Shown: positions 28,920 through 63,365 of the stretch, in pieces
Numbering within the stretch: position 1 is the first letter of the stretch
How the letters are laid out: every line of letters begins with the position of its first letter
Assembly: GCA_002269645.1 (NCBI GenBank)
Contig: NIVC01000112.1
Location: forward strand, 392,520 to 456,519
Length of the DNA stretch: 64,000 nucleotides
From: Macrostomum lignano
Taxonomy: Eukaryota
Direction: 5' to 3'
Notes under the pieces: model-generated
The model's input: the letters and a program-made list of their open reading frames with translations, nothing else
The model's database searches: none
What the model was told of the DNA's origin: nothing
Translations under genes and position numbers: made by a program

Positions 28920-28950
<31 letters not shown>

Positions 28951-43696: not shown

Positions 43697-44623
43697 ATGA
43701 CCGACCTGTGCTCATCCGGCAGTTACCGTCGGTGCATCATCCAGGCAGTGCCAACATCATCAGCGTCAACCTGCCTGCCCATCATCAGCATCCAGCAGCA
43801 ACATCATCAGCGTCAACCTGCCTGCCCATCATCACCACCAGCAGCATCATCAGCCCTCCTCGCCGCTGCCACTATCCCGACTCCTCAGCAGCAACAGCAT
43901 GGAGGCCTCGCCACTCAGCCCGTAGCTGCAGCACCTGGCATCGCAGTGAGCTCCAGCTCAGGCGCCTCGGCAGCTGTTCAGCAGCACCAGCAGCAGCCGC
44001 ACATCATTGCTCCGGCTGGGGTTGCTCAACCGGCGCCGCCGGGCTCGACCGCCCTGCTCCAAGTCGCCGCCGCCGCCGCCGCAGCCGCTGCCAGCCGGCC
44101 GCCAACCGGGCCGTTCGCCGTCTACCCCGCCTGCGCCTTCCAGCAGGCCGCCATCTCGCAGGCACAGCAGCTGCCGCCGCAGCAGCCAACATCGGCTGCG
44201 GCTCCGAATTCCGTATCGGCCGCGTCCGTCACTGGCTTGGCGCCTCATCAGCATCCCCAGCATCATCATCATCATCCAGCGAGTGCCGCCATTGTTCAGC
44301 TGGCCCCGTTCCCCCCGCCTGAGCAGCCGCTGCCACCGCCGCCTCAATCGCAGCCGCCCGTATCGCATCATCAGCAGCACCATCAACCCCAGCAGCCGCA
44401 GCACGTGTTCCTGCACCAACAGCAGGCCAGTCATCTGCTTGCCCCAACTCTGGCCCAGCCTCCGCCTGCGCCTCATCAGCATCAGCAAGCCCAGCATCAG
44501 CCAACCCAGCAACAACAACAGCAGCAGCAGCAAAAGCCTATCGTCCCAATTACCGTGGGATCTTCGGCTGCTCCCCCGGTCGTGTCTGTTGGAGTCTCCG
44601 TCACGGCCGCTTCGCCCGTCCAG
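43697..44623 (+). CDS. SIN3: SIN3 corepressor, exon 1 (low-complexity Q/H/P/A N-terminus)
   Basis: Open frame from ATG 43697 to donor CAG|gtgctg, phase 0, in frame with exon 2. The exact start is uncertain. Confidence 0.6.
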
Positions 44624-44944
44624 GTGCTGTACACACCTTTCTCAGGGACTACTCAAGTAGAAGGACTGAAAACTGCGTTTCTTGGAAAGTTTTAGGGGGC
44701 GGATTTGCCTCCTGAAAATTTTTCCAAGAAACCTTAGTTTCCTATCCTTCTTGAGTAGTCCTTGGCCTTTCTACCTGTTAACCCGATAACGTGAATTGTT
44801 GTAGATGATTTAAAGTTCAGCAGTCTCTTTAAACTTACACCGTGCTTTTCTTATAGCTCCTACGAAATTTGTAACTGCATCTTTTTATATTGCTACTTAC
44901 AGTAGCTGAATTAGACATTTTGCCTATAATTTATTTCATTCTAG

Positions 44945-45151
44945 TTGGGCAGCGGCGTCTCAGCAGCAGCAGCGGCCGCGGCGGCGGCGGCTGCGGCCGA
45001 GTCCAACAGAGCCACTTCGCAGAGCCAGAAGGTGGAGGACGCGCTGTCCTATTTAGATCAGGTGAAACTGCGATTCAGCGAGCACCCGGCCGTTTATAAT
45101 AACTTCTTGGACACTATGCGCGATTTTAAAGCCGCTTCTATTGACACTCAG
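44945..45151 (+). CDS. SIN3: SIN3 exon 2 (PAH1 N-half)
   Basis: ttcattctag|TTG ... CAG|gtgagt; [41 protein letters not shown]. Confidence 0.95.
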
Positions 45152-45249
45152 GTGAGTTTAATCCACTGAATCTTATATCGCCCAGCTCATACTACTACTT
45201 AGTGACCTACCATTTGATTTCATGAAGTCATTTGTTATAGTATCTACTC

Positions 45250-45720
45250 CTGTCATCTGCCATCTACCCCGTCATCTGCCATCTACCCCGTCATCTGCCA
45301 TCTACCCCGTCATCTGCCATCTACCCCGTCATCTGCTATCTACCCCGTCATCTGCCATCTACCCCGTCATCTGCCATCTACCCCGTCATCTGCTATCTAC
45401 CCCGTCATCTGCCATCTACCCGTCATCTGCCATCTACCCCATCATCTGCCATCTACCCCGTCATCTGCTATCTACTATCTACCCTTATAATCTACCATTT
45501 TCCCTCTAATCTACTATCTACCTTCCAATTTACTATCTACCCCTACAATCTACCAATTACCCTCCAATCTACTATCTATCCTCTAATTTACTATCTACCC
45601 TCTAATCTACAATTTACAATCTACCCCCTGTAATCTACCATCTACCCCTACAATCTACTATCTACCCTCCAATTTACCATCTTCCATCTATCCCGTTACG
45701 TGCCATCTACTTCCGTTATC
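45250..45720. repeat. 19-bp minisatellite (tcatctgccatctaccccg)n, degenerating 3'
   Basis: Intron 2 of SIN3. Confidence 0.9.
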
Positions 45721-45869
45721 TACAACTTATCCTTTTTATCTGCGCTGTTTAACTACTAAACTTCCATTCGGGAGTGCTTCTTGGACTCTATGCTTCTACA
45801 TAATTTGATTGAAGTTTTACAGCTGGGCATTCAGGTTGAGGTAAATTTCAATTTCAACTCGAATTTCAG

Positions 45870-46425
45870 GAGGTCATCAACCGAGTGAAAAATTTCTTCC
45901 AAGGCCACTCGGACCTCATACTGGGCTTCAATACTTTCCTGCCCAGCGGCTACAAGATGAAGGCCAGCTCGGACAATCAGACAATATCCCTGTTGCAGCC
46001 GAACAGGCCACCGGTGACCCTGGTTGGACCTGGCGGCAGCGGCGGCGCCGGCCCAGTCACGTCGGCTCAAAGTCAGCAGCTGCCGGGTCCCGCCGCAGCT
46101 GCCACCATCCTGCAGTCCTCTGCGGCGGCTGCTGGCGGCAGCGGAGCCGGAGGCGATCAATACGAGGAGTTCAATCACGCGATTTCCTACGTGAACAAAA
46201 TTAAATCTCGGTTCGCCGGCAGGTCGCCTATCTACAAGCAGTTTCTGGACATTCTGCACAAGTACCAGAAGGAGCAGCGGGCGGGAGAGGCGCATAGCAA
46301 CGAAGAGCAGGTGTTAGGCGAGGTGGAACGGTTGTTCGCTGGCCAACCTGACCTTCTAGAGGAGTTCTCGCAATTTCTGCCGCAGTCTTCTATAGCCCCG
46401 GTGACGCAACAGTTACGGGAGCACG
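45870..46425 (+). CDS. SIN3: SIN3 exon 3 (PAH1 C-half, PAH2)
   Basis: atttcag|GAG ... CAC G|gtgagt; EVINRVKNFFQGHSDLILGFNTFLP and EFNHAISYVNKIKSRF...DLLEEFSQFLP. Confidence 0.95.
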
Positions 46426-46506
46426 GTGAGTCTGTCGCGTTGCCATGGTGATTGTCATGGGTCTACGAAAATCGAATTCAATCGAATTCTCGTGGAAATT
46501 CCGCAG

Positions 46507-47267
46507 GCAAGGCCAGCAGCGGCTCTCCCCAGAGCGGCACGCATCCGGCTGCTGTTGGCGCCGCCGCCGGCGTGAAGCGCGCCAGGCCGACCTCCCTGAC
46601 CGCCGCTGCCGCCTCGCTAACCGCCGCCGAAGCCTCCATGTCGGCTGGAAGCGGCGGCGCCGAAAATTTAGGCGCCTCGGCGCCGACCTCCGCTAAAAAG
46701 GCGCACGTTGCAAGTGCCCAGCATCACCTGCAGCCTCATCAACAGCAGCGAGCGGCGGAGACAAATCCGGTTAGAGAGGCCGACCTCTTCGATCGGCTGA
46801 AAGCGGCGATGCCGGATGCTGACGTGTACGCGGGGTTCATGCACTGCGTGCACCTGTACAACAACGGCCGAATCGGCAAGGCCGACCTGCTGGCGCGGGC
46901 CGCCGGGCCGCTCAGGCCTCACCCTCAGCTCTACCGGGCTCTGAAGGACGCCCTGCACTCCGAGTCTTCCGGCAACCGCTTGACACCGGCCGCTGCCACC
47001 GGGTCTGCCTTGACTTCGGCCTCGTCTACCGCGGTCGGGCCTGCCGGCATTGTTGTTGAAGATCGAAGCGCCGGCGTTGTCGCTTCCTCGGCTTCGGCAC
47101 CGGCGGCGGCGTCGGTCGCGCCGGAAATGGACCGGGAGCCCGGCAGGCACCATCTGGATATTGACTTCAACACTTTGAAAAGGTGCGGCAACTCGTACCG
47201 AATGCTGCCCGCGGGCTACGCTCCGCCTAGGTGCAGTGGCCGGGAGAAACTGCCCGTGTGTCAGGAG
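46507..47267 (+). CDS. SIN3: SIN3 exon 4 (PAH3, start of HDAC-interaction domain)
   Basis: ttccgcag|GC ... GAG|gtacgt; LFDRLKAAMPDADVYAGFMHCVHLYN and IDFNTLKRCGNSYRMLP...CSGR...CQE. Confidence 0.92.
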
Positions 47268-47297
47268 GTACGTTTTTCTTGCGCTCTTGTTGACCTG

Positions 47298-47897
47298 TCC
47301 CGTCTCCCTGCACCCGTCTCCCTGCACCCGTCTCCCTGCACCCGTCTCCCTGCACCCGTCTCCCTGCACCCGTCTCCCTGCACCCGTCTCCCTGCACCCG
47401 TCTCCCTGCGCCCGTCTCCCTGCACCCGTCTCCCTGCACCCGTCTCCCTGCACCCGTCTCCCTGCACCCGTCTCCCTGCACCCATCTCCCTGCACCCGTC
47501 TCCCTGCACCCATCTCCCTGTGTACCCATCTCCCTGCACCCTTGTCCCTGCATTATCTCCCTGCGTTATCTCCCTGCATTATCTCCCTGCATCATCTCCC
47601 TGCGTTATCTCCCTGCCTATACCTCCCTGCATCGTCTCCCTGCACCCGTCTCCCTGCATCATCTCCCTGCATCATCTCCCTGCACCCGTCTCCCTGCACC
47701 TATCTCCCTGCATCATCTCCCTGCACCCGTCTCCCTGCACCTATCTCCCTGCACCCGTCTCCCTGCACCCGTCTCCCTGCATTATCTCCCTGCATCCATC
47801 TCCCTGCCTATATCTCCCTGCATCCATCTCCCTGCCTATATCTCCCTGCATCCATCTCCCTGCCTATATCTCCCTGCATCCATCTCACTGCCTATAT
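47298..47897. repeat. 14-bp minisatellite (cctgcacccgtctc)n
   Basis: Intron 4 of SIN3; interrupted at its 3' end by a SINE. Confidence 0.93.
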
Positions 47898-48269
47898 TTA
47901 TTATTATTATTTATTTAGAGGCAGGGGGGTTGTGTGCAACCTGGCGCAATTTAAGCGTCATTGGCACACAACCGGCGAGAGGCATTACTGCCCATTCCGC
48001 CGACTCCCCTGAGCAGGCATACAAGCGCGCGGATACGTTACGCAGGCACACACTCACACAGGAGTGTACAGCGGCCCTAACTTTATCAATTGTTAGGCAT
48101 GTACACTTCACTGCGCCTTGGGGGGGGGGTTGGCTCTCAAGGCCGTTAATTGCACGAGCGAGCCAAGCCAAGATTCCAATCCAGCCCCAAATTAATGTGG
48201 CTGCACTTGGAATCGAGCCTGGGTCGCGGCACACCAGAGCAGCTGCGCTACCGCTGGGCTACGCCCCCC
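47898..48269 (-). mobile_element. tRNA-derived SINE, ~370 bp, (TAA)n tail, 12-bp TSD CACTGCCTATAT
   Basis: The minus strand starts GGGGGGCGTAGCCCAGCGGTAGCGC...GGCTCGATTCC (A/B boxes) and ends taaataaataataataataa. TSD at 47886-47897 and 48270-48281. Confidence 0.88.
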
Positions 48270-48358
48270 CACTGCCTATATCTCCCTGCATCATCTCACT
48301 ACACCCTTCGCTAGCCATAAATCTGCAGTGCATTTATCTCCCCCAAAACTGCTCATAG

Positions 48359-48639
48359 GTGCTAAACGACAGTTTGGTGAGCTTCCCCAGCTGGTCAAGC
48401 GAGGACACGCAGTACGTGAGCTCCCGTAAGAATCAATTCGAAGAGGCCTGCTACCGAGTCGAGGACGAGCGCTACGAATTAGACATGGTGCTAGCAGTGA
48501 ACTGCTCAGCAATCAGAGCTCTGGAGGCTGTACTCAAACGGTTGCACAGGCTGCCCAGCCAGGAAGAGCAGGCTCATTATCGGCTGGGCGATGACTTAGG
48601 TGCCAGCTCCGGTGTGCTTCTGCGCAAGGCCATACAGAG
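48359..48639 (+). CDS. SIN3: SIN3 exon 5 (HDAC-interaction domain)
   Basis: ctcatag|GTG ... CAG AG|gtgcgc; [42 protein letters not shown]. Confidence 0.96.
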
Positions 48640-48734
48640 GTGCGCTTGTAGCTTTTGTTTTTAAATAGCATTCGCAGTGCAGAGATTACTATGAGTCCTT
48701 TCCTTTGCGCTGAACCCTGAAGTCTTTAGACACT

Positions 48735-50035
48735 ACTATAAGAATCGTCCTTAGATCTACTATGAGAATCGTCCTTAGATCTACTATGAGAATCGTCCTT
48801 AGATCTACTATGAGAATCGTCCTTAGATCTACTATGAGAATCGTCCTTAGATCTACTATGAGAATCGTCCTTAGATCTACTATGAGAATCGTCCTTAGAT
48901 CTACTATGAGAATCGTCCTTAGATCTACTATGAGAATCGTCCTCAGATCTACTATGAGAATCGTCCTTAGATCTACTATGAGAATCGTCCTTAGATCTAC
49001 TATGAGAATCGTCCTTAGATCCATCCTGAGAATCGCCCTTAGATCCATCCTGAGAATCGCCCTTAGATCCATCCTGAGAATCACCCTTAGATCCATCCTG
49101 AGAATCGCCCTTAGATCCATCCTGAGAATCGCCCTTAGATCCATCCTGAGAATCGCCCTTAGATCCATCCTGAGAATCGCCCTTAGATCCATCCTGAGAA
49201 TCACCCTTAGATCCATCCTGAGAATCGTCCTTAGATCCATCCTGAGAATCGCCCTTAGATCCATCCTGAGAATCGCCCTTAGATCCATCCTGAGAATCGC
49301 CCTTAGATCCATCCTGAGAATCACCCTTAGATCCATCCTGAGAATCGCCCTTAGATCCATCCTGAGAATCACCCTTAGATCCATCCTGAGAATCGCCCTT
49401 AGATCCATCCTGAGAATCACCCTTAGATCCATCCTGAGAATCGCCCTTAGATCCATCCTGAGAATCGCCCTTAGATCCATCCTGAGAATCGTCCTTAGAT
49501 CCATCCTGAGAATCGCCCTTAGATCCATCCTGAGAATCGCCCTTAGATCCATCCTGAGAATCGCCCTTAGATCCATCCTGAGAATCGTCCTTAGATCCAT
49601 CCTGAGAATCGCCCTTAGATCCATCCTGAGAATCGCCCTTAGATCCATCCTGAGAATCACCCTTAGATCCATCCTGAGAATCGTCCTTAGATCCATCCTG
49701 AGAATCGCCCTTAGATCCATCCTGAGAATCGCCCTTAGATCCATCCTGAGAATCGCCCTTAGATCCATCCTGAGAATCGCCCTTAGATCCATCCTGAGAA
49801 TCGCCCTTAGACCCATCCTGAGAATCGCCCTTAGATCCATCCTGAGAATCGCCCTTAGATCCATCCTGAGAATCGCCCTTAGACCCATCCTGAGAATCGC
49901 CCTTAGATCCATCCTGAGAATCGCCCTTAGATCCATCCTGAGAATCGCCCTTAGATCCATCCTGAGAATCACCCTTAGATCCATCCTGAGAATCGCCCTT
50001 AGATCCATCCTGAGAATCGCCCTTAGACCCTTAGA
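48735..50035. repeat. 24-bp minisatellite with two variant blocks switching at 49021
   Basis: gagaatcgtccttagatctactat, then gagaatcgcccttagatccatcct. Confidence 0.97.
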
Positions 50036-50637
50036 TATGCTTTACAATGCAACCTCTAAATCGTCTTAAATCCTACCCTGAGAATCGCCTCAGTTTTTTG
50101 CTCAGATATCTGGGAATTTCGTATTCCGAAAGCGCATTTTTTAATTCGAATATTTCCCACATAAAACGTGGCCGTGACTCACCGCCACCCGCTTAATATT
50201 TGATGAAGAACATCTCCGGTCTAACACATTCTCAATTGGGTCTCTCTTTGGTCGCCTGGTAACGATAAACTCGATGCCGCGCGATCATTTTCAATATATG
50301 ATTCCGCTATTCCAAGCCTGTATGCTGCTGTCGCGAGACAAAATGAGACTGTCTAAAATCCGCTAGTGTTAGCCTGATAAATGGGGAGCTTCATATTTTG
50401 CATAGAAGCATTTTCTGCTCGTTCTTCTTCAGCCAAATCGAATTTAAACCCGAATCGAATTTCAGATAAGCCTGCTGGCATTTCCGGTAGCTGCTTTCGA
50501 ATTGAGTTAGAATTTATTTAGTAAAACAAGCTTCATAGTTTACCGTTTCAAAGCCTCAGTTTACATTATAGTAGAAACAATGCGATTAGTTCAGGATAGC
50601 ACAGGCAATTAGTGCGGTTTGCTTTTCAGTATACATC

Positions 50638-50643
50638 TTTATT
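50638..50643 (-). terminator. Candidate poly(A) signal AATAAA of the Nav gene
   Basis: TTTATT on the + strand, about 350 nt downstream of the Nav stop. Confidence 0.4.
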
Positions 50644-50993
50644 TAAATATATACGGTAAGTAGGGAATCAGTGTAAATATAGCTGGTCTGAGCAAGCAGC
50701 TTATCAGTTGACAGATATTGCAGTTTGAGGCATAATCATGTCATTATAGGCATACAGTGAGCAGTAATTTGTCGTTTTATCCTATTGTGTTTGTTTTATA
50801 GATAGAGGACATTTAGCCTGTAATCGTTTATAATTTCATTTGGGTTTGCAAATTTTGTTATGCTGAAGCAGAAAAGCCTTTTGCGTGTTTGGGAGCAAGC
50901 AAATGTGCTTTTCATATTGTTAATTTCTAAATTGCAAGCAATATGATAGTAACAGTGTTTTATAGCATAATTAGATTCTTTCACCTCGCGAAG

Positions 50994-53900
50994 TTAAGCC
51001 TTCCTTTCAACAGCTTCGCTGCCTGCGGCTGCCAGCCTTCTCTCTTTGCATTTTGCCGCGTAGGCTCGAACGTATCGCGTTATGACGTTGGCTGCATATT
51101 TCTGCCTCTGCCGCTCCATGGTATTGCTAATGATGATTCTCTCGTCTTTGAGCTTGCCGCCGCCTTTAGGTTTGAGCGCCGACAGTTCCTCTTCGTCGGC
51201 CGCTGTGCCCAGAAAGTTTCGTGTCAAAGCGTCCAACAGATCGACGCAGAAGATGGTGTCGCCTTTGCAGATTGGCACGCTCAGCGTGGCCAGCTTGATC
51301 TTGTTGGGCTGCGGCAGCTGCAGCGGCGGCTCCAGCTCGTCTAGGAATTCGTACACCTGGTCTACGGCTATGAATCCCTTCGCCTTGGGATCGTAGGATT
51401 CCCATTTTTCGTAGAACAAATCAAAATCCTCCTGGTTAAGCCCTGCTGAACGTCTTCGGTAGCCTGGCTGAAGTTCTCTAGAATGACGGCGATGTACATG
51501 TTGATGATGACTAGGAAGCTGATGACCAGGTAAGAAATGAGGAACACCACCGCAATGGCGTAGTTGCCGCAGTCGCTGTGCGGCTTCTTATTCGGATTGC
51601 AATCGGGTTCCTCCTCATTGATGAGTCCGTCTAGGACGCTGTCCCAGCCAGCGGATGTGCTCAACTGAAACAGGACCACCATGCCGCTAGGGAAAGTCTC
51701 GAAGTTGAATATCTCGTCAATTCCGCTTCGATGACGAACGTGGCTAAAAAACGATATGCCTACTATGCTGTAGATGAACATGATCATGAACAGTAGCAGG
51801 CCGATGTTGAACAGAGCCGGCAGCGATACGAATAGCGAGAATAGCAGTGTCCGAATGCCGCGGGCAGACTTCACTAAGCGAAGAACTCGGCCAACGCGAA
51901 ACACTCGAACCACTCGTATCATAGTTGGCGGTATAGGAAGCCTTACCATGATGTCCTCAATAGCCCAGGTGAGAATGCTTAGCACAACGATAACAAAGTC
52001 GAACATGTTCCACGCAAATTTGAAGTAGTACCAACGCTGGGCGAGTAGCTTCATCACGCACTCTCCGGTGAATATAACAATGAAAAATCGGTTGATTTGC
52101 TCTACCGCGTCGTTGAATGCTTCCGATTGATTGTGGTGCTCAATACACATAACTATGGTGTTAAGCATGATGAATACCATGATTGCTATATCAAACTTTT
52201 GATCGTTAATCACCTTAAAAAAGAATTGAGGAATTCGTAGCTTCGGCTTTGGTACTGGTTTCTGCGGAGCCGTACTGCTCATCTTCTTCATTGCTTTATA
52301 GTAGCGCTTTTGGTCTTCCGTCATGAACAGCTCCACTGAACCGCCTGCTCTCTTCTTTTGCACGTTGAAATTGTCTATTATGACACCGATGAATAACTTC
52401 AGAGTGAAAAACGATCCGAATATGATAAATAGGACAAAGAACAGGTACATTGATGTGCTTGCGTCTCTGATTGGTTGATTGTTAGGGCCTGAAATAGAAA
52501 GATTTCTGTAATTGAATTCCTGTTTTTGCTTAACTTAATGATCCAACTGCAAAAGTTCCGTATCGCTTACCTGTTATGTCCACAGCGTCAGCAATAATTG
52601 GAATCCAGCCTTTGTAGGTAGCAATTTGAAACAATGCCAAGTAACCATTTAAAAAGTTGTCGAAGTTAATCCTTGAATTCTCCCAGCTGACGTTATGAAA
52701 TGCGGCTGCCATGGCTTCGCATGCCTCTTTATTGGGCACTAAATCAGCCGAGACTCGCTCGTTGTTGCTGTCGACGCACTTGTAGAATTGGCCTCCAAAC
52801 AGCTGCACTCCCATTATGCTGAATATAAGCCAAAATACTAGGCACACGAGCAGAACGTTAAAGATAGACGGAATAGCTTGAATCAGTGCATTGACGACAA
52901 CTTTCATGCCTTCCCATCGGCTGACTGCTCGTAGTGGTCTCAGAGCTCTCAGCGTTCTCATGGCCTTGAATGCTCCCATATTTTGGCCCGATGCGCCCCC
53001 GACAAGATTCAGGACTAGACTAAAAAGCGCAACGTTTACTATGACAAAATCCAACCAGCACCAGGCGTCTTTGAAGTACTTTTTTAATCCGAAGGCGAAC
53101 CATTTTACGACCATTTCAAAGGTAAATATGATCGTGAAGCATTTGTCCATGTATTCAAGGACTAACTTTAGCTTAGGTCTCTTTGGTAGATTTACATCCT
53201 CCAGTGTTAAAGTGACGCTGCTCAGCGCAATCATAAGGATGATAAACATTTCAAAATACTTGTGTTCAACCAGCTTGTATGCGCGGCAGCGAAATCCCCA
53301 CCAGATCTTTCCAAGATTGGTGTTGTCGCACAGCTGCACAGCCCTGGGGCAGAAATCCATGAGCTGCTTTGGCAGGCAATCCTCCGGCGCATCCCAGTAC
53401 TGTATGTCCACTTCGTTAATCTCCGGCTCTTCATCGAATTTTGGCGACAGCTTGTCTTCGATCGCAATGGCGAAGTGACCCGCCGGGAACACTTTATTTT
53501 GGTTGGCGCCAGCCGCATCTGAAAGAATGCTTGCTTCGTTTATGTCCTTAAATACCATTTGGCTTGCGGCGATTGTCACATTTTCCATTATGTATGTGCC
53601 ATGCTGTTTTAATGGAAACCTGCTATCCAACTGAATGCTTATTCTGTCTTTGCCGCTGGCTGGTTTCGCTTTGTCCTCGCTGCTGTCATCGGCGTCGTCA
53701 CTTTCGAATAGGTCATTGTCGTTGTAGCTGCGGGTGCATGCCTTGCCTACTAAGTACCAAAACAGTCGCTTGATATGAATCCTCGACCAGACTATAAATC
53801 TGTTTATCCTGTCTATGGCCTCCTGCAGTTTGTTTACTTCTTCCTCTTCCTCGCGTCGTTGCAAACTTTCGGCTCCGAAACTGCTCAGTAGAAGCGCCAG

Positions 53901-56877
53901 GAAAAGGCTCAGTACCACTAGACTGGCCAGAATGTTTGTCAGAAGAAAAAATGGTACACAGATATATCCGTTGACATTAATACAGCCCCACATGCTCTCG
54001 ATCCATTCACCGCATAGTACGCGAAATACAATCATGAAGCTGTGTGTGAAATCTTTAAAATTCCACCTCGGATAGTCGCCCTTAAATTCCGGATAGAGAG
54101 TTTCATTCTTATATAGTGCATAGTTTTCACCGAACAGCTGCATGCCTACCACGGCAAAGATGAATATTATAATGCCCAATACGAACACTAAGTTTCCTAG
54201 CGCGCCCATTGTTCTAGCGATGATTGCGAATAAAAGATTCATTGTCTGCCAGGATTTCGCCAGTTTAAAAACCCTTAGAAGTCGAAAGGCGCGTAGGATG
54301 GAAAGACCTTGAACATTTTGCAGTGTTAGTTCTACGAAACTTAGAACTACAATCGTGAAGTCAAATATATTCCAGCCGTCCTTGAAGTAAACTTGCGGCT
54401 TCATTGCGATTAGTTTGCATACTGCTTCAATCCCGAAAGTGGCCGTAAAAAATAGATTTGCGTTGCTTAAAATTTCTTTAAATGTCGGCGTATTAGATGG
54501 GACATCAAGGGCCATGCAAGCGGTGTTAACGAGTATGCATAACGTAATGAAAAGCTCTACGAATGGGTCCAGGATGAAGTAACTGACGTACTTCTCCAAC
54601 ACCTTCCAGCAGTAGCAGCATTCCCAACTGTAGCAAAATTTTTCAAGAAACAGGTGCTTGTAGTGTTCGAACTTCTTTTCCTTCGGTCTGCACTCAACTT
54701 CCTCCTTTTCTGGCTTTGTTGTTGCTGCATCTTCGATCAGTGTTTTCAGTACCACCACATCATTCATTTCGACTTCCTGACCAGCTGGTGGCTGCGAGGT
54801 AGTTTCACGCAATGTACGTTGACTCTGAGTTTTTCTAATACCTAGTAGCTCTTTGTGGTCCAATACCCCTGGCTGTTTAGTTTCCTCTTGCAACAGAATT
54901 TCAGGTATCGGTTTGTCCGAACCGTTTCTTGTGCACATCAGGATGTCTTTGTACTTTCGCGATTCCAGAGGTGACTTGCTGTTTGCTATCTTTCCAAGAA
55001 GATCCGTCTTTGTTGGCTGCCTGTTAGCGAAAGCTGAAAACAAAGCAAAGTATTTAAACTTGCTGTTGAAACTATCTCTTTGCTCCCTCGCGCTGGCGTC
55101 CGAAGCTGGCGTGTGGGCTGCCGAATCATCTGCATATGGAAAGCTGATGGTCTCCAGTACATTCACTTGCGTGCAGTCGCTTGGTTTCCAGTGAAACCGA
55201 TCCTTGTGCTTAATGCACGGAGATCCTGGCAGACTGACACTTTTTGATTTATGCTTCAAAAAGTGCTTAGAAATGTAGCTGCTGATTGGCGTTCGCACTG
55301 GGCCGCCTTCAATTTTGTCAGAACGAATGCTCAACTTGTCCAAACTTTTCTTTGCACTTTCCAACGGTATTCCCGCCGCTTTGTAAATGTCTGTAATGCT
55401 GAGACAGCTCACTTCATCTGAGAAGCTTTTCTCAATTGAAGCCTCTTTCACTTGTTCCTCCTGTTCACGTCTCTCGTCTTCCTGCTTTCTGGCTGCTTCT
55501 TCCTCTTCCTCGTCCAGTTTGTCCTGTTTTCTGACTTCGTCATAAGCCATAGCAACTATGGCTAGGATTACGTTAATCAGAAAGAAGGAACCCATCATTA
55601 TGACTAAGACGAAGAACACCACGTGAGGTGTCCCATTAGTTCGAATGATTAATTGGTAAAGACTCTCCCAAGCGTCTTGAGTCATTAAACGAAAGGCGCA
55701 CAGCATCGACCAGCCAAAGTTATCAAAGTTGGTGTAGCCAAAGTTCGGATTTACCTTGTCCGTTCGAAAGCATTCAAAGCCTTCGGGACATTGTTGTCCT
55801 AGGTCACTATTTAGGGAGCAAACTCGCAGTTCGTCTGGATATCCCAGCCAGTTGCTTTCGTTGTTGTGGTGGATCTTTCGAACTTGATCTTTCAGGTCTT
55901 TAAGCTCATCACTCGTTAGTTCTGATGCGTTGCCCATGTATTCGTAGTCAAGGTATTCAGTAAAGTTAAATTTACTGACGCATTTTTGAAGAAGTGTTCC
56001 TTTATATACTTGTAATCCGACTAGGGCAAAGATACTAAGGACAAATATTGTAAGGATTCCAACGTCTCTGAGTCTCTTCACGGCCTCCATTAGCGCCCCA
56101 ACAATGGTCTTCAGTCCTGGTACAGTGGTTACCGTTTTAAGCGCACGCAGCACTCGAAGAGACCGAAGCGCACTAAGATTGCCCAGTGTTGGTACGAAGA
56201 ACATGATGTAAGCCAGTCCTATAACTATAAAGTCAAGCCAGTTCCAAGCGTCGCGCAGATACGTAAACTCCGTGAGTATTAAGCCGCGCGATATAGCCTT
56301 GATAGTGGCTTCGGTTGTATAGATTGCCGTGAAGGTGTGCAGATAATGAGACCAACAGTACGAGCATAGAAAAAGCCGGATGAGTCAGTATGCGGATTGC
56401 TACCCGCCTGATCGGATTGAAAGGCGACAGAAGAAACAGCGCATTGGTTGCTGAAAACCGAAAGATCGTCTTGTCTCGTGAAACTACCACGAAGGTGAAC
56501 TTATCTCCGTAATAATCGTCGATATCTTCAAGAAGTGCGCCACCCAGCCTCTTGGCTGAAAACTTGTCGCTCAGAGCTGGCGGCAATTTCATGCCGGCGG
56601 CAAGCTTTGGATTCGGCCTGCGCTCGTCCGACGTTGTCGTTGTTGGCTTTGTCGGACTGTGCTTCGCCTCGTCCGCGGCCTCGCCAGTCTCATTGAGGCC
56701 GTGTTTGCACACTCTGCCAGCAAGAGGAGTCGCCGCATTCGCGTGAGTGTGCGCGGCGCCAAAAGCCGATGCGTGCGCGCTAAGCGCCTGGCCTAGAAAA
56801 GTGCCCTCCTCTTGCCGGCGTACGATCCGCTCCAAGGACTGTTTAGTAAACGGTCGGAACGGTTGCTCTTCCTCCAT
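50994..56877 (-). CDS. Nav1: Voltage-gated sodium channel alpha subunit (Nav1/para-like, ~1930 aa), nested antisense in SIN3 intron 5; one 82-bp intron and two frame lesions
   Basis: Four S1-S6 repeats with Arg-rich S4s. Filter D(55674-76)/E(54006-08)/K(52611-13)/A(51650-52). Inactivation motif [11 protein letters not shown] (52322-30), EF-hand-like and IQ-like C-terminus, and para-like linker motifs (SLPGSP, YADDS, DVVVL). Segments are 56350-56877, 52571-56336, 51436-52488 and 50994-51434. Confidence 0.93.
52489..52570 (-). other. Only intron of the Nav gene (82 nt, phase 1, DIII pore loop)
   Basis: ACA G|gtaagcg...tttctatttcag|GC CCT restores ...[25 protein letters not shown]. Confidence 0.92.
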
Positions 56878-58254
56878 TTCGGAAGCAACAGTTGAAAGAT
56901 CTAGCTAATTCTCTATTCAATCTGAGCTCATTTTTTCGGTTTAAAAAATTTGATATTATAAGTAAATTCCTGCTCTTTGAAACGCTCTGATGACATTCAG
57001 TAGTGGGAGTTTATAGCCCGCTTACTGTTCCCCCCTCACTCGCTGTGCGGTTTCTGCTTCACCCCTTGGCTGACTACCGGAGTATCTGCATTCTCTGCCG
57101 CCTGCCAAGATGCGGCTCTCTTCCAATTGGTCACTGCCCCCATTCGGATAAGAGTCAGAGCGTTGAAGCAACCATAGGATCTCATACGCTATCAGCAGCG
57201 TTGCTGAGCCCCGTCCTCTACTGTCTCTTGGTCAGCAACCACAGTCTTCACATTCTCCCTGTCTTTTTCTCTGCTGCTATCGCCTTGCTCTTTCTCTCGA
57301 ATCACCAAAGCGGCCCCTGTTTAGTTGGGCTCTCCCTGGACCAGCAAGCAACATCTGGTTGGCCTCCTCCCAATTCGCTGTCGCTCTGCACCCCCGGCCT
57401 TAATTCATCCGGAGCTGGGCCATCTCGCCCTCTACCCGAGCTGAGCAGCCAACCACCCCGTATATCGCACCCTGCATACATTATGAGCTCCGGATTCCAG
57501 ATTGCTTTCTGGGAGGAACCCTCCCCTTCTAGACACTGGTTGTTCTTGCCTATCCTTCTCATCTTAATCCACCAGTTTAGGCGAGTTTGCCCGGTCTGGG
57601 CGGGTATCGATAGCTGGGTCGCCTGTTCGCCCTCTGCTCTAGCATGGTGCGGGAGAGAGACGGGGGCTGCCGGGAAAATTGCAGTTTGCATTTTTTTTCC
57701 TGGCTTCATCCCCATGCCGCTGCTCCCCAATGCCCGCATGCGCCAATGCCAGAAGCGCATATAGCTACTGCGCCTTTAATCGAAGCGCCTCGGCTCAGGG
57801 GGATATGCCGCCGCTTTTCCTTGTCAGCGCGTCCCCTTGCAAATGGCTTAGGCCTTGTGTTTGGCTTCTCTCAGAGCGCACGCTATGAGGATAAGAGTCA
57901 CTTCTGCCATGGGCCACCGCTTTGGCTATTTAGCCCGACAACTCCATCCTGGCGTTCTCTTGCCACGGCCATTCAAGCTTTTAATTCGTTCTCGTGAACT
58001 ACTATAATAAGGCTTTTTACAGATCGAAACTGTATTGGAAATTAGGGTTGTCCCGAATGCGCTGAACTCTGATTCTGACACAGTCAGCCACTTGTGGTAC
58101 TTTTAGCGCCCTAGAAACAAGAATATCTTTTCGAAATTCAAAATTTTATTCGCCTCCATTCATTATGTCCCCCGTCTGCTCCCTATTTCCGGCCTCTGCG
58201 TATATCTGCCTTCACGAGACACGTCCTAAAAATCCGTATTGTCCTTTATATGCA

Positions 58255-59090
58255 TCCCCCTCGATGCATCCGCCCCTTCATGGATTCGCCTCTTCATGCA
58301 TCCGTCCCTTCAAGCATCCGCCCCTAGATGCATCCGCCCCTTCAAGCATCCGTCCCTTCAAGCATCCGTCCCTAGATGCATCCACCCCTTCATAAATCCG
58401 CCCCTAAATGCACCCGCCCCTTCATGAATCCGCCCCTAGATGCATCCGCCCCTGTATGTATCCGCCCCTTCGATGCATCCGCCCCTTCCATGCATCCGCC
58501 CCTTCCATGCATCCGCACCTTCCATGCATCCGCCCCTTCGATGCATCCGCCCCTTCGATGCATCCGCCCCTGTATTATCCGCCCCCTCGATGCATCCGCC
58601 CCTTCATGGATCCGCCTCTTCATGCATCCGTCCCTTCAAGCATCCGCCCCTAGATGCATCCGCCCCTTCAAGCATCCGTCCCTTCAAGCATCCGTCCCTA
58701 GATGCATCCACCCCTTCATAAATCCGCCCCTAGATGCATCCACCCCTTCATAAATCCGCCCCTAAATGCACTCGCCCCTTCATGAATCCGCCCCTAGATG
58801 CATTCGCCCCTAGATGCATCCGCCCCTGTATGTATCCGCCCCTTCGATGCATCCGCCCCTTCCATGCATCCGCCCCTAGATGCATCCGCCCCTAGATGCA
58901 TCCGCCCCTTCGATGCATCCGCCCCTTCCATGCATCCGCCCCTTCCATGCATCCGCCCCTTCCATGCATCCGCCCCTTCGATGCATCCGCCCCTTCGATG
59001 CATCCGCCCCTGTATTATCCGCCCCTTCGATGTATCCGCCCTTCGATGCATCCGACCCTTCGATGCATCCGCCCCTTCGATGTATCCATC
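58255..59090. repeat. 17-18-bp minisatellite (gatgcatccgccccttc)n
   Basis: 3' part of SIN3 intron 5. Confidence 0.93.
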
Positions 59091-59181
59091 CCTGTCTATA
59101 TCCACCCACAAGCTTAACCTGCAATTCATTGGCTATATATTGCCTCATCCTTCTAATACTACCGCTGCATTGCAATTGCAG

Positions 59182-59956
59182 AATCTATGGCGAACGCGCC
59201 CAGGGCATCATCCAGGGTCTGCAGGACAGCCCGGCAGTGGCGGCGCCGCTCATACTGAAGCGCCTGCGCGCCAAACAAGAAGAATGGCGCGACGCGCAGA
59301 AAGCATTTAATCGAGTGTGGCGCGAACAGACCGAGCGATGCTATTTAAAAAACCTCGACCATCAGAGCGCCAACTTCAAGCAGACGGACCAGAAACAGCT
59401 GCGCACCAGGGCGCTGGTCACGGAGATCGCCGGCCGGTCTGGCAGCGGCGCCTGCGGCCAGCTCCAGCTGCCCATGCCGGCCGACCCGACCGTCCGCAAA
59501 GACGGCGTCGACCTGCTCATTCACCACGTCAAGCGGCAGAGCTACGCTAAAGACGAGAAATCCGCCGTCAAGCGGCTTCTTCGTCGATGGCTTCGCGACC
59601 TCCTGCTGGAGACTCGGCTGCCGTTGAGCGACGACGAGGGCAGCGACGGCGAGGATCCCGACGTTGACAGCGCGTCTGCAGCCGCCGCTCCGGCTCTGAT
59701 CGGCAACAACAACATCTACGCCCTGCTGCGGCTGTACCAGCTGCTGTGCAAGCGCCTGGCCGCCGCCAAATCCGCCTGCGATGCCGCCGCCGCCGCTGCA
59801 ACTTCCGGCGACTCCACCGGATCGGACAGCACCGCCGTGGCGCTGCGGCTGCGGCAGCCGCCGGCTGTGCGACCGGACCGGCTGTACGAGCACTTCATGC
59901 ACCAGCTGGTGTCCCTGATGGACGGCGCCGTGGACTCGGCTGTGTTTGAGGACCAG
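59182..59956 (+). CDS. SIN3: SIN3 exon 6 (HID C-half and downstream region)
   Basis: caattgcag|A ATC completes R-IYGERAQGIIQGLQDSPAVAAPLILKRLRAKQEEWR...LKNLDHQSANFKQTDQK. Its phase matches exon 5 across 10.5 kb. Donor CAG|gtctgt. Confidence 0.96.
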
Positions 59957-60026
<70 letters not shown>

Positions 60027-60077
60027 CTGTCTGTTAGTGTCTGTCTGTCTGTCTGTCTGTCTTAGTGTCTGTCTTAG

Positions 60078-60148
<71 letters not shown>

Positions 60149-60159
60149 CTGTCTGTTAG

Positions 60160-60240
<81 letters not shown>

Positions 60241-60292
60241 GCCTGTCTGCCTGTCTGCCTGTCTGCCTGTCTGTCTGCCTGTCTGCCTGTCG

Positions 60293-60332
<40 letters not shown>

Positions 60333-60380
60333 GTCTGTCTGTCTCTGTCTGTCTCTGTCTGTGCTGTCTGACTGTCTGCC
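59957..60380. repeat. (GTCT)n microsatellite beginning at the splice-donor GT
   Basis: Carries ttagt interruptions like the array at 21345-22690. Confidence 0.95.
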
Positions 60381-60437
60381 TTAGCTTAGTATCAGTCTGT
60401 CCAGCTTATTATCTCAATCGCTGCCTTCCCCACGCAG

Positions 60438-60604
60438 GTGCGCGAGCTGCTCGGTGTGCAGCATTACGAGCTGTTCACCCTGGACAAGCTGGTGGCCCTG
60501 GCTGTTCGCCAGCTGCACATCATGGCCACTGACGATTCGGCCAAGCAACTGCTTCGCCTGTGGAGCTCTTTCAGAGCTACAGGCGGCACCAAGGAGGAGT
60601 ACAA
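60438..60604 (+). CDS. SIN3: SIN3 exon 7 (Sin3a_C)
   Basis: ccacgcag|GTG ... TAC AA|gtgagt; VRELLGVQHYELFTLDKLVALAVRQLH. Confidence 0.92.
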
Positions 60605-60659
60605 GTGAGTGGCTTTGCCCACTATTAGCAGTGCTCAACACATCCAAGCTGATATGATG

Positions 60660-61110
60660 ATCCACAATTCTATCCCATACCCAATCCCACACTAGCCACA
60701 ATTCTATCCCACACCCAATCCCACACTAGCCACAGTTCTATCCCACACCCAATCCCACACTAGCCACAGTTCTATCCCACACCAATCTCACATCAATCCC
60801 ACACCAGTTCCACACCAATCCCACACCAGTCCCACACCAGTCCCACACCAGTCCCACACCAATCCCACACCAATCCCACACCAGTCCCACACCAGTCCCA
60901 CACCAATCCCACACCAATCCCACACCAATCCCACACCAGTTCCACACCAGTCCCACACCAATCCCACACCAGTCCCACACCAGTCTCACACCTATCCTAC
61001 ACCAGTCCCACACCAGTCCCACACCAATCCCACACCAATCCCACACCAGTCCCACACCAGTCCTACACCAATCCCACACCAGTCCCACACCAATCCCACA
61101 CCAATCCCAC
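60660..61110. repeat. 11-bp minisatellite (ccacaccaatc/ccacaccagtc)n
   Basis: Intron 7 of SIN3. Confidence 0.92.
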
Positions 61111-61136
61111 GCAAACGCCCCACCCGAATCCCGCAG

Positions 61137-61457
61137 GCGCAGAGCCGAGCGGCTCATGGCCGAGTCGCACCACCAGTCGCAGCAGGAGAATCTTTTTCGC
61201 GTCGCAGTCGATCAAGAATCTCGCCAGCTCACATTCCAGCTGATGGAGCGGCAGCAGCCGCCTCCGTCTCCGCCGCCGGAGCCTGCGCCAACTCAGACTA
61301 CGCAGCCGCCCCGGCCGCCGTCGGAGGACCCGGCCCCCGACGTGGCAGCCTCCGTGGAAGTGGCCGGTTCACCCCCGCCTGAGCGGCCGGAATCTGCCAC
61401 TGCTGCTGACTGCTCAGGTGGAAATTGTAGCTGGTTGCAGTATCTGCAGAAGTACAG
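61137..61457 (+). CDS. SIN3: SIN3 exon 8
   Basis: atcccgcag|G ... TAC AG|gtgagc; RRAERLMAE...ENLFRV...WLQYLQKY. Confidence 0.85.
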
Positions 61458-61479
61458 GTGAGCCACTGCTTTCGGCACA

Positions 61480-62075
61480 CTGCATCCCACACTGTTCCCC
61501 ATTTTGTATCCCACACTGTTCCCCACACTGCATACCACACTGCATCCCACACTGTTCCCCACACTGCATCCCACACTGTTCCCCACACTGCATCCCACAC
61601 TGTTCCCCACACTGCATCCCACACTGCATCCCACACTGTTCCCACACTGCATCCCACACTGCATCCCACACTGTTCCCCACACTGCATCCCACACTGCAT
61701 CCCACACTGTTCCCCACACTGCATCCCACACTGCATCCCACAGTGTTCCCCACACTGCATCCCACAGTGTTCCCCACACTACATCCCACACTGCATCCCA
61801 CACTGCATCCCACACTGCATCCCACACTGCATCCCACAGTGTTCCCCACACTGCATCCCACAGTGTTCCCCACACTACATCCCACACTGTTCCCCACACT
61901 GCATCCCACACTGCATCCCACAGTGTTCCCCACACTGCATCCCACAGTGTTCCCCACACTGCATCCCACACTGTTCCCCACACTGCATCCCACACTGTTC
62001 CCCACACTGCATCCCACACTGTTCCCCACACTGCATCCCACACTGTTCCCCACACTGCATCCCACACTGTTCCCA
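61480..62075. repeat. 12/13-bp minisatellite (cacactgcatcc/cacactgttcccc)n
   Basis: Intron 8 of SIN3. Confidence 0.93.
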
Positions 62076-62134
62076 GTCAACAATGCCTATATAAATAACA
62101 ACTATGATGCAACCCACCGCTCCCCGATAAGCAG

Positions 62135-62408
62135 AGGTGGCGTCTCGGACGACCGGGCGGCGCCTGACTCGAACGAGCAACTTCGCATCCGCCAGGTGTT
62201 TCTGGTGCGCAACGCTCTGCAGTGGATTCGCCTGGCCAAGGCATGCAGGCAGGACTCCGCCAACGGTGAGGCCGAGATGCCAGCCTCTGCCGAGTTGCCA
62301 GCCTCTTCCGAGTTGCCAGCCTCTGCCGACCCTTCAGAGTCAGTACGGCAAAGGGTTCAATGGCAGCGAGATATTTGGAGTCTGCTCAGGGCTACGTTTG
62401 GTTTCCAG
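62135..62408 (+). CDS. SIN3: SIN3 exon 9
   Basis: Tandem TAAG/CAG acceptor (62132 or 62135, both phase 2) and donor CAG|gtatgc; RQVFLVRN. Confidence 0.75.
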
Positions 62409-62689
62409 GTATGCCGAAGCTTTTCTTGGTATCCCTAACTGTGAATCGCATAATTAAAATTTAATACAGAACTTCCCAACCCCTACTGACAAAAATCCTC
62501 ATACTCGAATCACTAGGGTACCAATTCGTTAAGTATAAAAGCATTCAAATCTGTAATTACAGAGATCGCCATTCCCTAGTTGTAAAAATTCTTTGCCCCA
62601 AATCATTAACCCGAATCCCAAATCAAATTACTTCAACATTCCAATTCATACACTCAAATCCGAAATAGAGAATCCTCAAATCCCAAATG

Positions 62690-62930
62690 AAACTATTTTA
62701 AAAACCCCATATACGTCGTAATAAAATCCTCAAATCCCAAATAGAAAATCCCCAAATCCCAAAATCAAATTACTCCCAAATCCCATAGAAATCCTCATAT
62801 CCCAAATAGAAAATCCCCAAATCCCCAAATCAAATTACTCCCAAATCCCATAGAAATCCTCATATCCCAAATAAAAATCCCCAAATCCCAAATCAAATTA
62901 TTCCCATATAAACTGCTCGAATCCCAGGTC
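62690..62930. repeat. Degenerate C/A-rich repeat (aaatccccaaatcc...)
   Basis: Intron 9 of SIN3. Confidence 0.75.
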
Positions 62931-62957
62931 ATAAAACCCGCTAACCTCCCCAACCAG

Positions 62958-63365
62958 GCCCGAACAAGCGAGCTATTCCAAGGCGTTACCTACTGGGATC
63001 AGATGGAGATTCGCGGAGTCAGCAAGCGCGCCTGCGTCCTCATGTACGCCACCGGCTGCGAGAGCGTCTTCTACAGGTCCGGCCAGCTGGCCTGCGCCAA
63101 AGCCACCCACCGGGCCGTCACCCAGGCTAAGCGGGCCCGGCTCGCTGATTGGCTGGCCCGGCCAACCAATCGGGAGCGGCTGGCTGGGGACGCGGCCTGC
63201 CGGGCGTGGCTGCTGGGCCAGGCGGCTGAGGACAATCGGCCCGGCCTGCGGACCAGCCGCATCATGCTGAGCCCGGGCTCCACCGGACCGCCATACCACT
63301 CCTATAACCGCTACAGGACCGTGGTAGAGCACCCGCCCCGCCGCCGGCCCCGCCGGAATCGCTGA
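62958..63365 (+). CDS. SIN3: SIN3 exon 10 (last coding exon)
   Basis: cccaaccag|GCC; QMEIRGVSKRACVLMYATGCESVFYR resembles the Sin3 C-terminus; ends in TGA. Confidence 0.82.
   Translation, partial: ARTSELFQGVTYWDQMEIRGVSKRACVLMYATGCESVFYRSGQLACAKATHRAVTQAKRARLADWLARPTNRERLAGDAACRAWLLGQAAEDNRPGLRTSRIMLSPGSTGPPYHSYNRYRTVVEHPPRRRPRRNR

Follow-up and report, generated by a model that had tools for sequence, protein, structure and literature searches.

A Nav1-type sodium channel coding region in antisense orientation within a SIN3 intron of the flatworm Macrostomum lignano

This study was concerned with a 64,000-nucleotide stretch of Macrostomum lignano DNA (contig NIVC01000112.1, positions 392,520 to 456,519 of the forward strand), referred to as the window, in whose coordinates all positions are given. 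The window carries a gene for the SIN3 corepressor on the + strand, and an entire Nav1-type sodium channel coding region is found on the - strand inside one of its introns. The Nav coding sequence (50994-56877), the candidate poly(A) signals and the 5' flank all lie within 48640-59181. We put at about 0.7 the probability that this is a genuine host/nested pair, in which an intron-poor Nav1 paralogue lies antisense in a long SIN3 intron, selectively neutral by default, with lesions that are most likely technical. A preliminary description of this DNA knew of no described Sin3-Nav nesting, and no report linking both as nested genes was found in the literature searched, where the pair is thus previously undescribed; the nested layout itself is well known.

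The SIN3 model consists of nine exons, the N-terminal exon being undefined, and the reading frame is kept throughout. Its features are as follows.

43571-44695, + strand: Q/A/P-rich upstream exon, probably within these limits
44945..45151, + strand: exon with PAH1 (Pfam PAH match); donor CAG/GTGAGT at 45151/45152, 5' limit uncertain
45870..46425, + strand: end of PAH1 and PAH2 (Pfam PAH 3e-19; splice sites)
46507..47267, + strand: PAH3-like region and start of the HDAC-interaction domain, HID (…HLDIDFNTLKRCGNSYRMLP…CQE); donor GAG/GTACGT at 47267/47268, alignment to SIN3B (8bpa)
48359..48639, + strand: exon 5, Sin3_corepress/HID core (Pfam PF08295, 2e-22), ending in KAIQ plus AG (phase 2)
48640..59181, + strand: host intron, 10,542 bp, GTGCGC…TTGCAG, phase 2; GT at 48640-41, AG at 59180-81
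59182..59956, + strand: exon 6, remaining HID (IYGERAQGII…NFKQTD…) and start of Sin3a_C (homologue and SIN3B alignment)
60438-60604, 61137-61417, 62077-62408 and 62958-63550, + strand: 3' exons, mapped by P0140 at 100% identity

The spliced model contains the corepressor domain set, with Pfam matches to PAH (1e-36), Sin3_corepress (9e-32) and Sin3a_C (5e-36), and its HID can be aligned with structures of human SIN3B and of yeast Sin3. The host intron interrupts a universally conserved HID motif, KAIQ/R/IYGERA. Exon 5 ends in CAG AG and exon 6 opens with A at 59182, so that AG+A restores the arginine codon. A 10.5-kb, phase 2 intron splitting the HID, as the preliminary description had it, proved exact at 48640-59181, both in its splice sites and in a gapless homologue alignment. 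In this alignment, residues 6-113 of the SIN3 homologue P0121 match 48299-48640 and residues 113-424 match 59180-59953. In addition, residues 388-596 of human SIN3B (8bpa) form one block over the exon 5/6 junction, and the Sin3A HID fragment 2n2h also covers it. From the canonical splice sites, phase and homology, we infer that exons 5 and 6 are joined in the mature mRNA; homologue searches with SIN3 queries, which gave few matches, returned no M. lignano transcript-derived protein. At 10,542 bp, the host intron contrasts with the remaining seven introns of SIN3, which measure 81-1,091 bp.

The contents of the host intron, from left to right, are listed here.

48741..50027, no strand assigned: 24-bp tandem array, 53.6 copies, 97% identity
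50028..50993, - strand: 3' flank of Nav and probably its 3'UTR, with no second copy in the window (38% GC)
50994..52488, - strand: Nav exon 2, end of DIII-S6, III-IV linker with LFM, DIV, C-terminal domain and stop
52489..52570, - strand: sole Nav intron, 82 nt, GTAAGC…TTTCAG, phase 1 within the Gly codon of DITG/PNNQ
52571..56877, - strand: Nav exon 1, ATG at 56877, N-terminus, DI, DII and most of DIII
56878..58263, - strand: Nav 5' flank, 1.39 kb, unique, 51% GC
58264..59087, no strand assigned: 16-bp tandem array, about 50 copies

The Nav coding region runs from the ATG at 56877 to a TAA at 50996-50994, a span of 5,884 nt, with an in-frame stop 30 nt upstream of the ATG. Pfam Ion_trans matches (3e-152 and 4e-68) cover three stretches in a 1224-aa ORF and two in a 360-aa ORF. 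The protein has four domains with S4 arginine ladders and aligns end to end with Nav1 proteins. Its conceptual translation gives a DEKA selectivity filter (TQDAWE / CGEWIE / TYKGW / TSAGW). The DEKA filter has its lysine in DIII, while Nav2 channels carry DEEA and Cav channels EEEE. The inactivation motif of the III-IV linker is LFM, a variant of IFM/MFM. The best PDB matches are Nav1.x channels (E ~1e-250), and Cav matches reach at most 1e-124. On its translated sequence the nested gene is a Nav1-type voltage-gated sodium channel, and a Na+ current is predicted. These domains and motifs fit the ~5.9-kb antisense Nav1 coding region of the preliminary description. M. lignano has at least three divergent groups of paralogues (68% identity), to one of which the gene belongs. 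Its GC3 (0.53-0.67) differs sharply from that of SIN3 (0.75). A promoter or trans-splice acceptor could lie nowhere but in the 5' flank. AATAAA candidates are present on the - strand at 50643-50638 and 50518-50513, about one being expected by chance in that AT-rich kilobase. Thus, the upstream region and candidate poly(A) signal previously assigned to Nav are both present inside the intron, the latter with this reservation.

The two tandem arrays make up 2.1 kb of the host intron, and strand-biased arrays (C-rich on the + strand) are present in most other SIN3 introns too. Spurious open reading frames of roughly 435 aa arise from the 24-bp array on either strand. Tandem arrays dominated a repeat search over the whole window. 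Self-BLAST of the non-tandem flanks of the host intron gave no dispersed repeats, a Pfam scan of the remaining ORFs in the intron, including those of the Nav 5' flank, gave no match, and the 43-64 kb interval was free of Rfam and tRNA matches. The preliminary description had passed over the tandem repeat, the single Nav intron, the lesions and the chimeric gene model described below.

Nav has one intron in 5.85 kb and SIN3 at least eight in 3.8 kb. Nav genes elsewhere are divided into many coding blocks, at least 20 in Lottia (mollusc) and at least 23 in Tubulanus (nemertean). At the genome average of 4.9 introns per ~3-kb transcript, the Poisson probability of one intron or fewer in Nav is about 6e-4. 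The intron that remains lies 2 nt from a phase-0 intron common to Lottia and Tubulanus; the chance of a new intron arising that close to one of ~22 ancestral sites is about 0.02. A classical processed retrogene was considered and rejected because this near-ancestral intron is retained, and no poly(A) tract was found downstream of Nav. The strong depletion points to some reverse-transcriptase-mediated intron loss. Sodium channel genes elsewhere have 20 or more exons, and a Nav1 paralogue almost free of introns adds a little to their history.

Outside support for the 3' side of the nest comes from a public gene model. A0A1I8HP94 (P0155) is a + strand chimeric model in which three antisense-Nav ORFs (51774-51971, 53221-53475 and 56516-56743) are spliced to SIN3 exon 6 at 59182/3. 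Therefore, a second annotated M. lignano sequence has Nav followed by SIN3 exon 6 in the same order. SIN3 exon 5, the 24-bp array and the Nav 3' end, which form the 5' side of the nest, were seen in this window only. Public M. lignano models here are split or chimeric, to the extent that one SIN3 model opens with antisense-Nav ORFs.

As written in the window, the Nav reading frame is broken by two frameshifts, and the last SIN3 exon contains a third lesion.

56337..56352, - strand: lesion 1, a 16-nt remnant (GTCTCATTATCTGCAC) in place of 60 nt encoding AIICNCVFMAQNSSSEAVEY (DI-S1 / S1-S2 loop)
51434/51433, - strand: lesion 2, one C lost from a CCC run in Nav exon 2, so that ACC-CAG reads ACCAG
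63336-63339, + strand: lesion 3, one C lost from a C-run in the last SIN3 exon

Lesion 1 is a complex 46-nt deletion with a 2-nt insertion, and its net loss of 44 nt shifts the frame. It is not an intron, because it is down to 16 nt and the frame stays shifted whichever splice sites are chosen. The 20 missing amino acids are present in P0001 and in the public M. lignano protein A0A1I8HM84 (P0154), and a search for a displaced mini-exon found them encoded nowhere else in the window. At lesion 3 the SIN3 frame stops at 63363-63365; the corrected frame continues to a TAG at 63548-63550, and P0155 and P0146 read HPPPPPAPPESLTTE… there. One-nucleotide losses in C homopolymers account for two of the three lesions. 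Assemblies of M. lignano are built from PacBio reads and contain many duplications (PMC5730564). P0154 lacks both Nav lesions and equals the bridged Nav at 1926 of 1926 aligned residues. Because this intact protein is otherwise identical, the Nav lesions are probably assembly errors, and all three lesions are most likely consensus errors of long-read assembly rather than pseudogenization. Lesion 1 is not a typical homopolymer error and could be a real allele on a duplicated chromosome copy. A polarity test of the window against P0001 was moot, since the seven differences are artefacts of the P0001 model itself. For annotation the finding is of practical use, since the three window indels would mislead automated annotation into pseudogene calls.

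The lesions could also be read as decay, the window's Nav copy then being a recently inactivated pseudogene, redundant in a partly duplicated genome and carried as a passenger by its host. Two independent frame-breaking lesions in 5.85 kb of coding sequence would fit this reading, as would the removal of conserved DI-S1 residues by something other than a simple homopolymer slip and the lack of the 20 residues throughout the window. The P0002 model likewise skips 15 aa at the spot of lesion 1, and in the DV1 line additional chromosome copies are present and 180 Mb of sequence falls in blocks of ≥95% identity (PMC5730564). However, two indels without a single substitution over those 1926 residues are the pattern left by consensus error rather than by decay. 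Premature stops are absent elsewhere in Nav, and the essential host gene has a similar C-run loss in its last exon. We therefore regard inactivation as unlikely. Much less probable still is an assembly chimera, with the Nav segment misplaced between the SIN3 halves at the tandem arrays. Long arrays of this kind are classic misjoin sites and two of them bound the Nav block, the genome is hard to assemble (PMC5730564), and the window contains at least three indel-type errors. However, with units of 24 bp and 16 bp, the arrays are too unlike for both junctions to be due to a single repeat. The SIN3 halves are correct in order, orientation and phase, P0155 independently shows the adjacency of Nav to exon 6, and an erroneous 8-kb insertion exactly in an intron needs two coincident chimeric joins.

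If the genuine host/nested pair is accepted, the likeliest course is that a block of about 8 kb (50028-58263) with a young, already largely intron-stripped Nav duplicate landed in a SIN3 intron otherwise made of C-rich (+ strand) tandem arrays, like most other SIN3 introns. A search for insertion hallmarks gave neither a target-site duplication nor a poly(A) tract, so this history is conjecture. The SIN3 pre-mRNA would be transcribed through Nav and the whole block spliced out. Nav transcription would start from its own 1.4-kb upstream flank and probably end before the 24-bp array. A neutral arrangement would be expected, with at most mild transcriptional interference in co-expressing cells and no dedicated regulatory link. 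In Drosophila about 10% of genes are nested, 71% of those on opposite strands; opposite-strand nesting is the commonest form of gene overlap, and nested genes are often young duplicates in long introns (PMC5174743). The SIN3/Nav pairing is a curiosity and not a surprise, an ordinary nested-gene layout.

A functional nest was also considered, in which antisense transcription couples SIN3 and Nav and SIN3 dosage gates Nav expression, whether by colliding RNA polymerases, by intronic antisense RNA or by silencing of intragenic promoters that depends on SIN3/HDAC. The geometry alone allows this, as transcription of the two genes converges over the full length of Nav. In Drosophila, the members of nested pairs diverge in expression, which has been put down to interference (PMC5174743). 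Mammalian Sin3 and REST corepress neuronal genes. Mammalian Sin3B attaches to the C-termini of Nav channels and reduces the channels at the cell surface (PMC3786298). However, these mammalian links act in trans, through protein or chromatin, and are silent on cis linkage. The locus is without a conserved element, RE1-like site or structured RNA, and the other sampled SIN3 genes are without Nav (L001, L002 and L003, with 15-22 kb of context; L005 and L006, SIN3 stretch only). A scan with the RE1/NRSE consensus gave four 3-mismatch matches in the whole window, where 1.4 are expected by chance, and none in the intron. The REST/Sin3-style regulatory link raised as speculation in the preliminary description thus finds no RE1/NRSE-like site near Nav. 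To our knowledge, no REST orthologue has been described in flatworms. The description of Nav as cell-type-restricted was likewise an assumption: the one published M. lignano Nav in situ, which may be of another paralogue, is near-ubiquitous in juveniles and shows gonad/stem-cell expression in adults (PMC3447372). For these reasons, coupling seems improbable to us. The structural part of the earlier interpretation, a complete antisense Nav1 in an HID-splitting intron, stands and is backed in part by P0155; its functional overtones find no support in the sequence.

Within the bodies of transcribed genes, initiation is kept down by SIN3/HDAC complexes. It is a long shot, with even less to commend it than coupling, that the host intron itself is new: a reverse-transcriptase-derived, intron-depleted Nav1 duplicate would have inserted into a SIN3 HID exon at a proto-splice site (CAGAG/A) and been tolerated as an intron, so that a promoter within the SIN3 gene would now be under the control of SIN3. 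If so, SIN3 dosage would be a cis-linked gate on a sodium channel. If both genes are expressed, transcriptional interference could be studied at this locus in a compact natural setting, with a 5.9-kb gene antisense in a 20-kb essential host and in a flatworm amenable to transgenesis.

The host shares the scaffold of SIN3A/SIN3B, with PAH repeats, Sin3_corepress/HID (E 1e-72 to human SIN3B 388-596) and Sin3a_C. It differs in the intron at KAIQR/IYG, which is absent from all six other SIN3 genes examined, a biased sample in which five are single-ORF gene calls. The nested gene shares with bilaterian Nav1 (Drosophila para, vertebrate SCN1A-11A) the four Ion_trans domains, DEKA, S4 ladders and a hydrophobic III-IV triplet, at 43-46% identity to mollusc, nemertean and insect Nav1, but has one intron rather than 20 or more, LFM rather than IFM/MFM and a degenerate IQ motif. 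The mammalian Sin3B-Nav interaction and REST/Sin3 silencing of Nav involve the same two gene families (PMC3786298, PMC5356016); however, they are vertebrate links in trans, whereas the M. lignano pair is one of cis position only, without an RE1-like site. The closest likeness in layout is to animal host/nested pairs such as Drosophila 2mit in a timeless2 intron, the TipE cluster and vertebrate LRRTM genes in alpha-catenin introns. In these, too, a complete gene lies on the opposite strand of a long intron, and the nested partner has few introns and probably arose by recent duplication (PMC5174743, PMC3786989, PMC3933685, PMC3240667). The M. lignano internal gene differs from them in being unusually large, with a 5.9-kb coding sequence of about 1,948 aa.

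The SIN3 gene, on the + strand, carries a Nav1-type sodium channel gene (Nav) on the opposite strand within the intron between its exons 5 and 6. The parts of this arrangement are as follows.

48359-48639, + strand: SIN3 exon 5, ending …AAG GCC ATA CAG AG
48640-41 and 59180-81, + strand: GT and AG splice sites of the host intron, between SIN3 exons 5 and 6
59182, + strand: start of SIN3 exon 6, whose first base, A, joins the AG ending exon 5
56877 (ATG) to 50996-50994 (TAA), - strand: Nav coding sequence, inside the host intron
48741-50027: 24-bp tandem array in the host intron (53.6 copies, 97%)
50028-58263: unique block between the two arrays
58264-59087: 16-bp tandem array in the host intron

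The junction of exons 5 and 6 aligns without gaps with unrelated SIN3 proteins and with human SIN3B (8bpa residues 388-596, E 1e-72), and it is covered by the fragment 2n2h of the Sin3A HDAC-interaction domain (HID). P0140, a UniRef SIN3 fragment from M. lignano, matches five + strand blocks of the window at 100% identity. Nine exons within 44945-63365 make up the spliced SIN3 model; all are in frame, every intron is GT-AG, and the model scores for the PAH, Sin3_corepress and Sin3a_C domains. The remaining seven introns span 81-1,091 bp, and the host intron is ten times longer. The preliminary description was right in the coordinates and phase of the host intron and in the split of the HID.

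The Nav ATG is preceded by an in-frame stop 30 nt upstream. The conceptual protein of ~1,948 aa contains four Ion_trans domains, a DEKA selectivity filter (TQDAWE, CGEWIE, TYKGW, TSAGW), S4 arginine ladders and an LFM triplet in the III-IV linker. Its closest solved structures are Nav1.4, Nav1.2, Nav1.7 and similar channels (E ~1e-250), with Cav channels far behind, and the proposed assignment as a Nav1-type channel is agreed on the basis of domains, filter and structural relatives. A 1224-aa ORF of this gene (52530-56204, - strand) has 97% identity, by local alignment, to M. lignano "Sodium channel protein" entries and 43-46% identity to mollusc, nemertean and insect Nav1/para proteins. Together with the P0140 match, this identifies the window as M. 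lignano genomic DNA. Two AATAAA motifs lie 351 and 476 nt beyond the stop, and the 1.39 kb 5' of the ATG is unique sequence; neither is evidence of function by itself.

The nesting was also evaluated against the public + strand model P0155 (A0A1I8HP94). The first three "exons" of this model are antisense ORFs within Nav, located in the window as follows.

51774-51971, + strand: P0155 antisense-Nav "exon"
53221-53475, + strand: P0155 antisense-Nav "exon"
56516-56743, + strand: P0155 antisense-Nav "exon"

P0155 joins these ORFs to SIN3 exon 6 at 59182/3, runs through the SIN3 3' exons and continues beyond the SIN3 stop. The model is wrong as biology, being a chimera, but in its source sequence Nav precedes SIN3 exon 6, ordered and oriented as in the window, which covers the Nav-exon 6 side. 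An assembly misjoin could place the two genes together artificially; this is considered very improbable because two chimeric junctions would have to coincide, at arrays whose units differ. Antisense nesting of Nav in the SIN3 intron, as originally described, holds by splice sites, phase and homology, with P0155 backing one side.

Three frame-breaking indels in the window sequence, not noted in the preliminary description, bear on whether these genes are intact.

56352-56337, - strand: lesion 1, 16 nt replacing the 60 nt that code for AIICNCVFMAQNSSSEAVEY (DI-S1 and the S1-S2 loop)
51434/51433, - strand: lesion 2, a CCC run short one C, just past DIV-S6
63336-63339, + strand: lesion 3, a C-run in the last SIN3 exon with one C fewer than in two public M. 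lignano models

Lesion 1 has a net change of -44 nt; all relatives conserve the AIICNCVFMAQNSSSEAVEY segment, and no coding copy of the lost residues was found elsewhere in the window. Lesion 2 puts QGLTQEDFD out of frame. At lesion 3 the window reads HPPRRRPRRNR followed by a stop, and the two public models read HPPPPPAPPESLTTE…; as written, SIN3 stops ~60 aa early, and the alternative frame is open to TAG 63548-63550. The public protein P0154 (A0A1I8HM84, 1946 aa) agrees with the bridged Nav translation of the window at 1926/1926 aligned residues (cluster look-up), carries the 20 residues missing at lesion 1 and reads through lesion 2. A genuine null allele of very recent origin, on a duplicated chromosome, could underlie the lesions, lesion 1 in particular, but this is regarded as unlikely. 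The pattern points to consensus errors because Nav has zero substitutions yet two indels relative to P0154, two of the three lesions are homopolymer losses, and the essential host gene has a matching lesion. Lesion 3 is probably an assembly indel. The M. lignano genome is repeat-rich, with 15% simple or tandem repeats, partly duplicated and assembled from PacBio reads (PMC5730564).

The UniProt M. lignano models at this locus (P0155, P0146, P0001 and P0002) are chimeric or damaged. For example, P0146 (A0A1I8FGS2), labelled RB_A, has its start in SIN3 exon 6 but in an incorrect reading frame, and conserved parts of Nav are left out of P0001 and P0002.

Nav has a single intron of 82 nt (52570-52489, - strand), overlooked in the preliminary description. 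In contrast, the Lottia orthologue has at least 20 coding blocks across 28 kb and the Tubulanus orthologue 23 across 29 kb. M. lignano averages 4.9 introns per ~3-kb transcript (PMC5730564), from which the probability of one intron or fewer in the 5.85 kb Nav was computed as ~6e-4. The neighbouring SIN3, 2 kb off, has retained 8 introns or more over 3.8 kb. Judged from these gene structures, Nav has undergone massive intron loss, and its compact footprint lets it fit inside an intron. The retained intron is in phase 1, within the Gly codon of DITG/PNNQ, 2 nt from a phase-0 intron common to Lottia (DSRG/EYEQ) and Tubulanus (DFRG/KEKQ). It is probably this ancestral intron, slightly shifted, because a new intron would fall so close to one of ~22 ancestral sites with a chance of ~0.02. 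A classical processed retrocopy was rejected on account of the near-ancestral intron.

In most SIN3 introns a strand-biased tandem array takes up the greater part of the sequence; the units differ from array to array (4-36 bp), and the majority are C-rich on the + strand.

45242-45690, 47299-47891, 48741-50027, 58264-59087, 59957-60378, 60662-61110, 61476-62074 and 62723-62906: SIN3 intron arrays

The two host-intron arrays thus look like native intron material. A (GTCT)n array begins exactly at the exon 6 donor, where the splice-site GT is the first repeat unit. The 24-bp array is stop-free in frames of both strands (48689-50069), and an ORF caller would report the resulting spurious ORFs (439 and 435 aa; MDLRAILR…/RIALRSIL…) as genes. 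The rest of the host intron yielded no dispersed repeat, ncRNA, tRNA or Pfam domain, and neither a target-site duplication nor a poly(A) tract was recognisable as a hallmark of insertion. GC3 is 0.75 in SIN3 versus 0.53-0.67 in Nav. The simplest history would be that a Nav duplicate with few introns inserted into an intron of SIN3.

The KAIQR/IYG site of the HID, split by the host intron, contains no intron in fish SIN3 (L005) or in five single-ORF eukaryotic SIN3 gene calls; that the intron is lineage-specific is only a lead, since single-ORF calls are a sample biased to intron-less genes. Nav is absent at all six SIN3 comparison loci, two of which (L005 and L006) were covered across the SIN3 stretch only. 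The closest SIN3 among the loci examined, in a metagenome eukaryote (L001, ENA ERZ25070786 ctg128190l, 4262-6593; HID 66% identical), is compact, without this intron and without Nav nearby, and has a DDE_Tnp_IS1595 ORF upstream.

Elsewhere in the window, an intact 1038-aa ORF (15961-19077, - strand) with apurinic-type endonuclease (Exo_endo_phos) and reverse transcriptase (RVT_1) domains resembles a full-length non-LTR (LINE-like) retrotransposon. A 539-aa ORF (27598-29217, + strand) has weak C2H2 zinc-finger matches, most under Pfam's own cut-offs, and is a possible zinc-finger gene with a single exon. At 24694-27038 all three + frames are open, giving three ORFs of 680-763 aa that overlap; GC skew is strongly negative there, Pfam gives no match, and the ORFs presumably reflect a long stop-free repeat tract. 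Tandem arrays at 31152-31842 and 32800-33085 are opposed as 286-nt inverted repeats (~90% complementarity, ~1-1.3 kb apart).

In an antisense nest, polymerases could collide or antisense RNA could arise from the intron, but the sequence offers no argument for a dedicated SIN3-Nav regulatory link; an RE1/NRSE scan gave chance-level matches, with zero in the host intron, and the vertebrate Sin3-REST and Sin3B-Nav connections operate in trans (PMC3786298). Nav had been called cell-type-restricted, a view not borne out by the one published in situ for an M. lignano voltage-gated sodium channel transcript (RNA815_5834, possibly another paralogue), which is broad rather than neuron-restricted: near-ubiquitous in juveniles and gonad/stem-cell in adults (PMC3447372). 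The literature searched contained no account of SIN3/Nav nesting, in line with the earlier statement, and none of M. lignano SIN3. The most useful by-products are the near-intronless Nav1 and the annotation lessons from indels and chimeric public models. In Drosophila, ~10% of genes are nested, ~71% of these on opposite strands, and the genes inside are typically young duplicates with few introns (PMC5174743). The SIN3/Nav pair fits this pattern, except for the large size of its internal gene.
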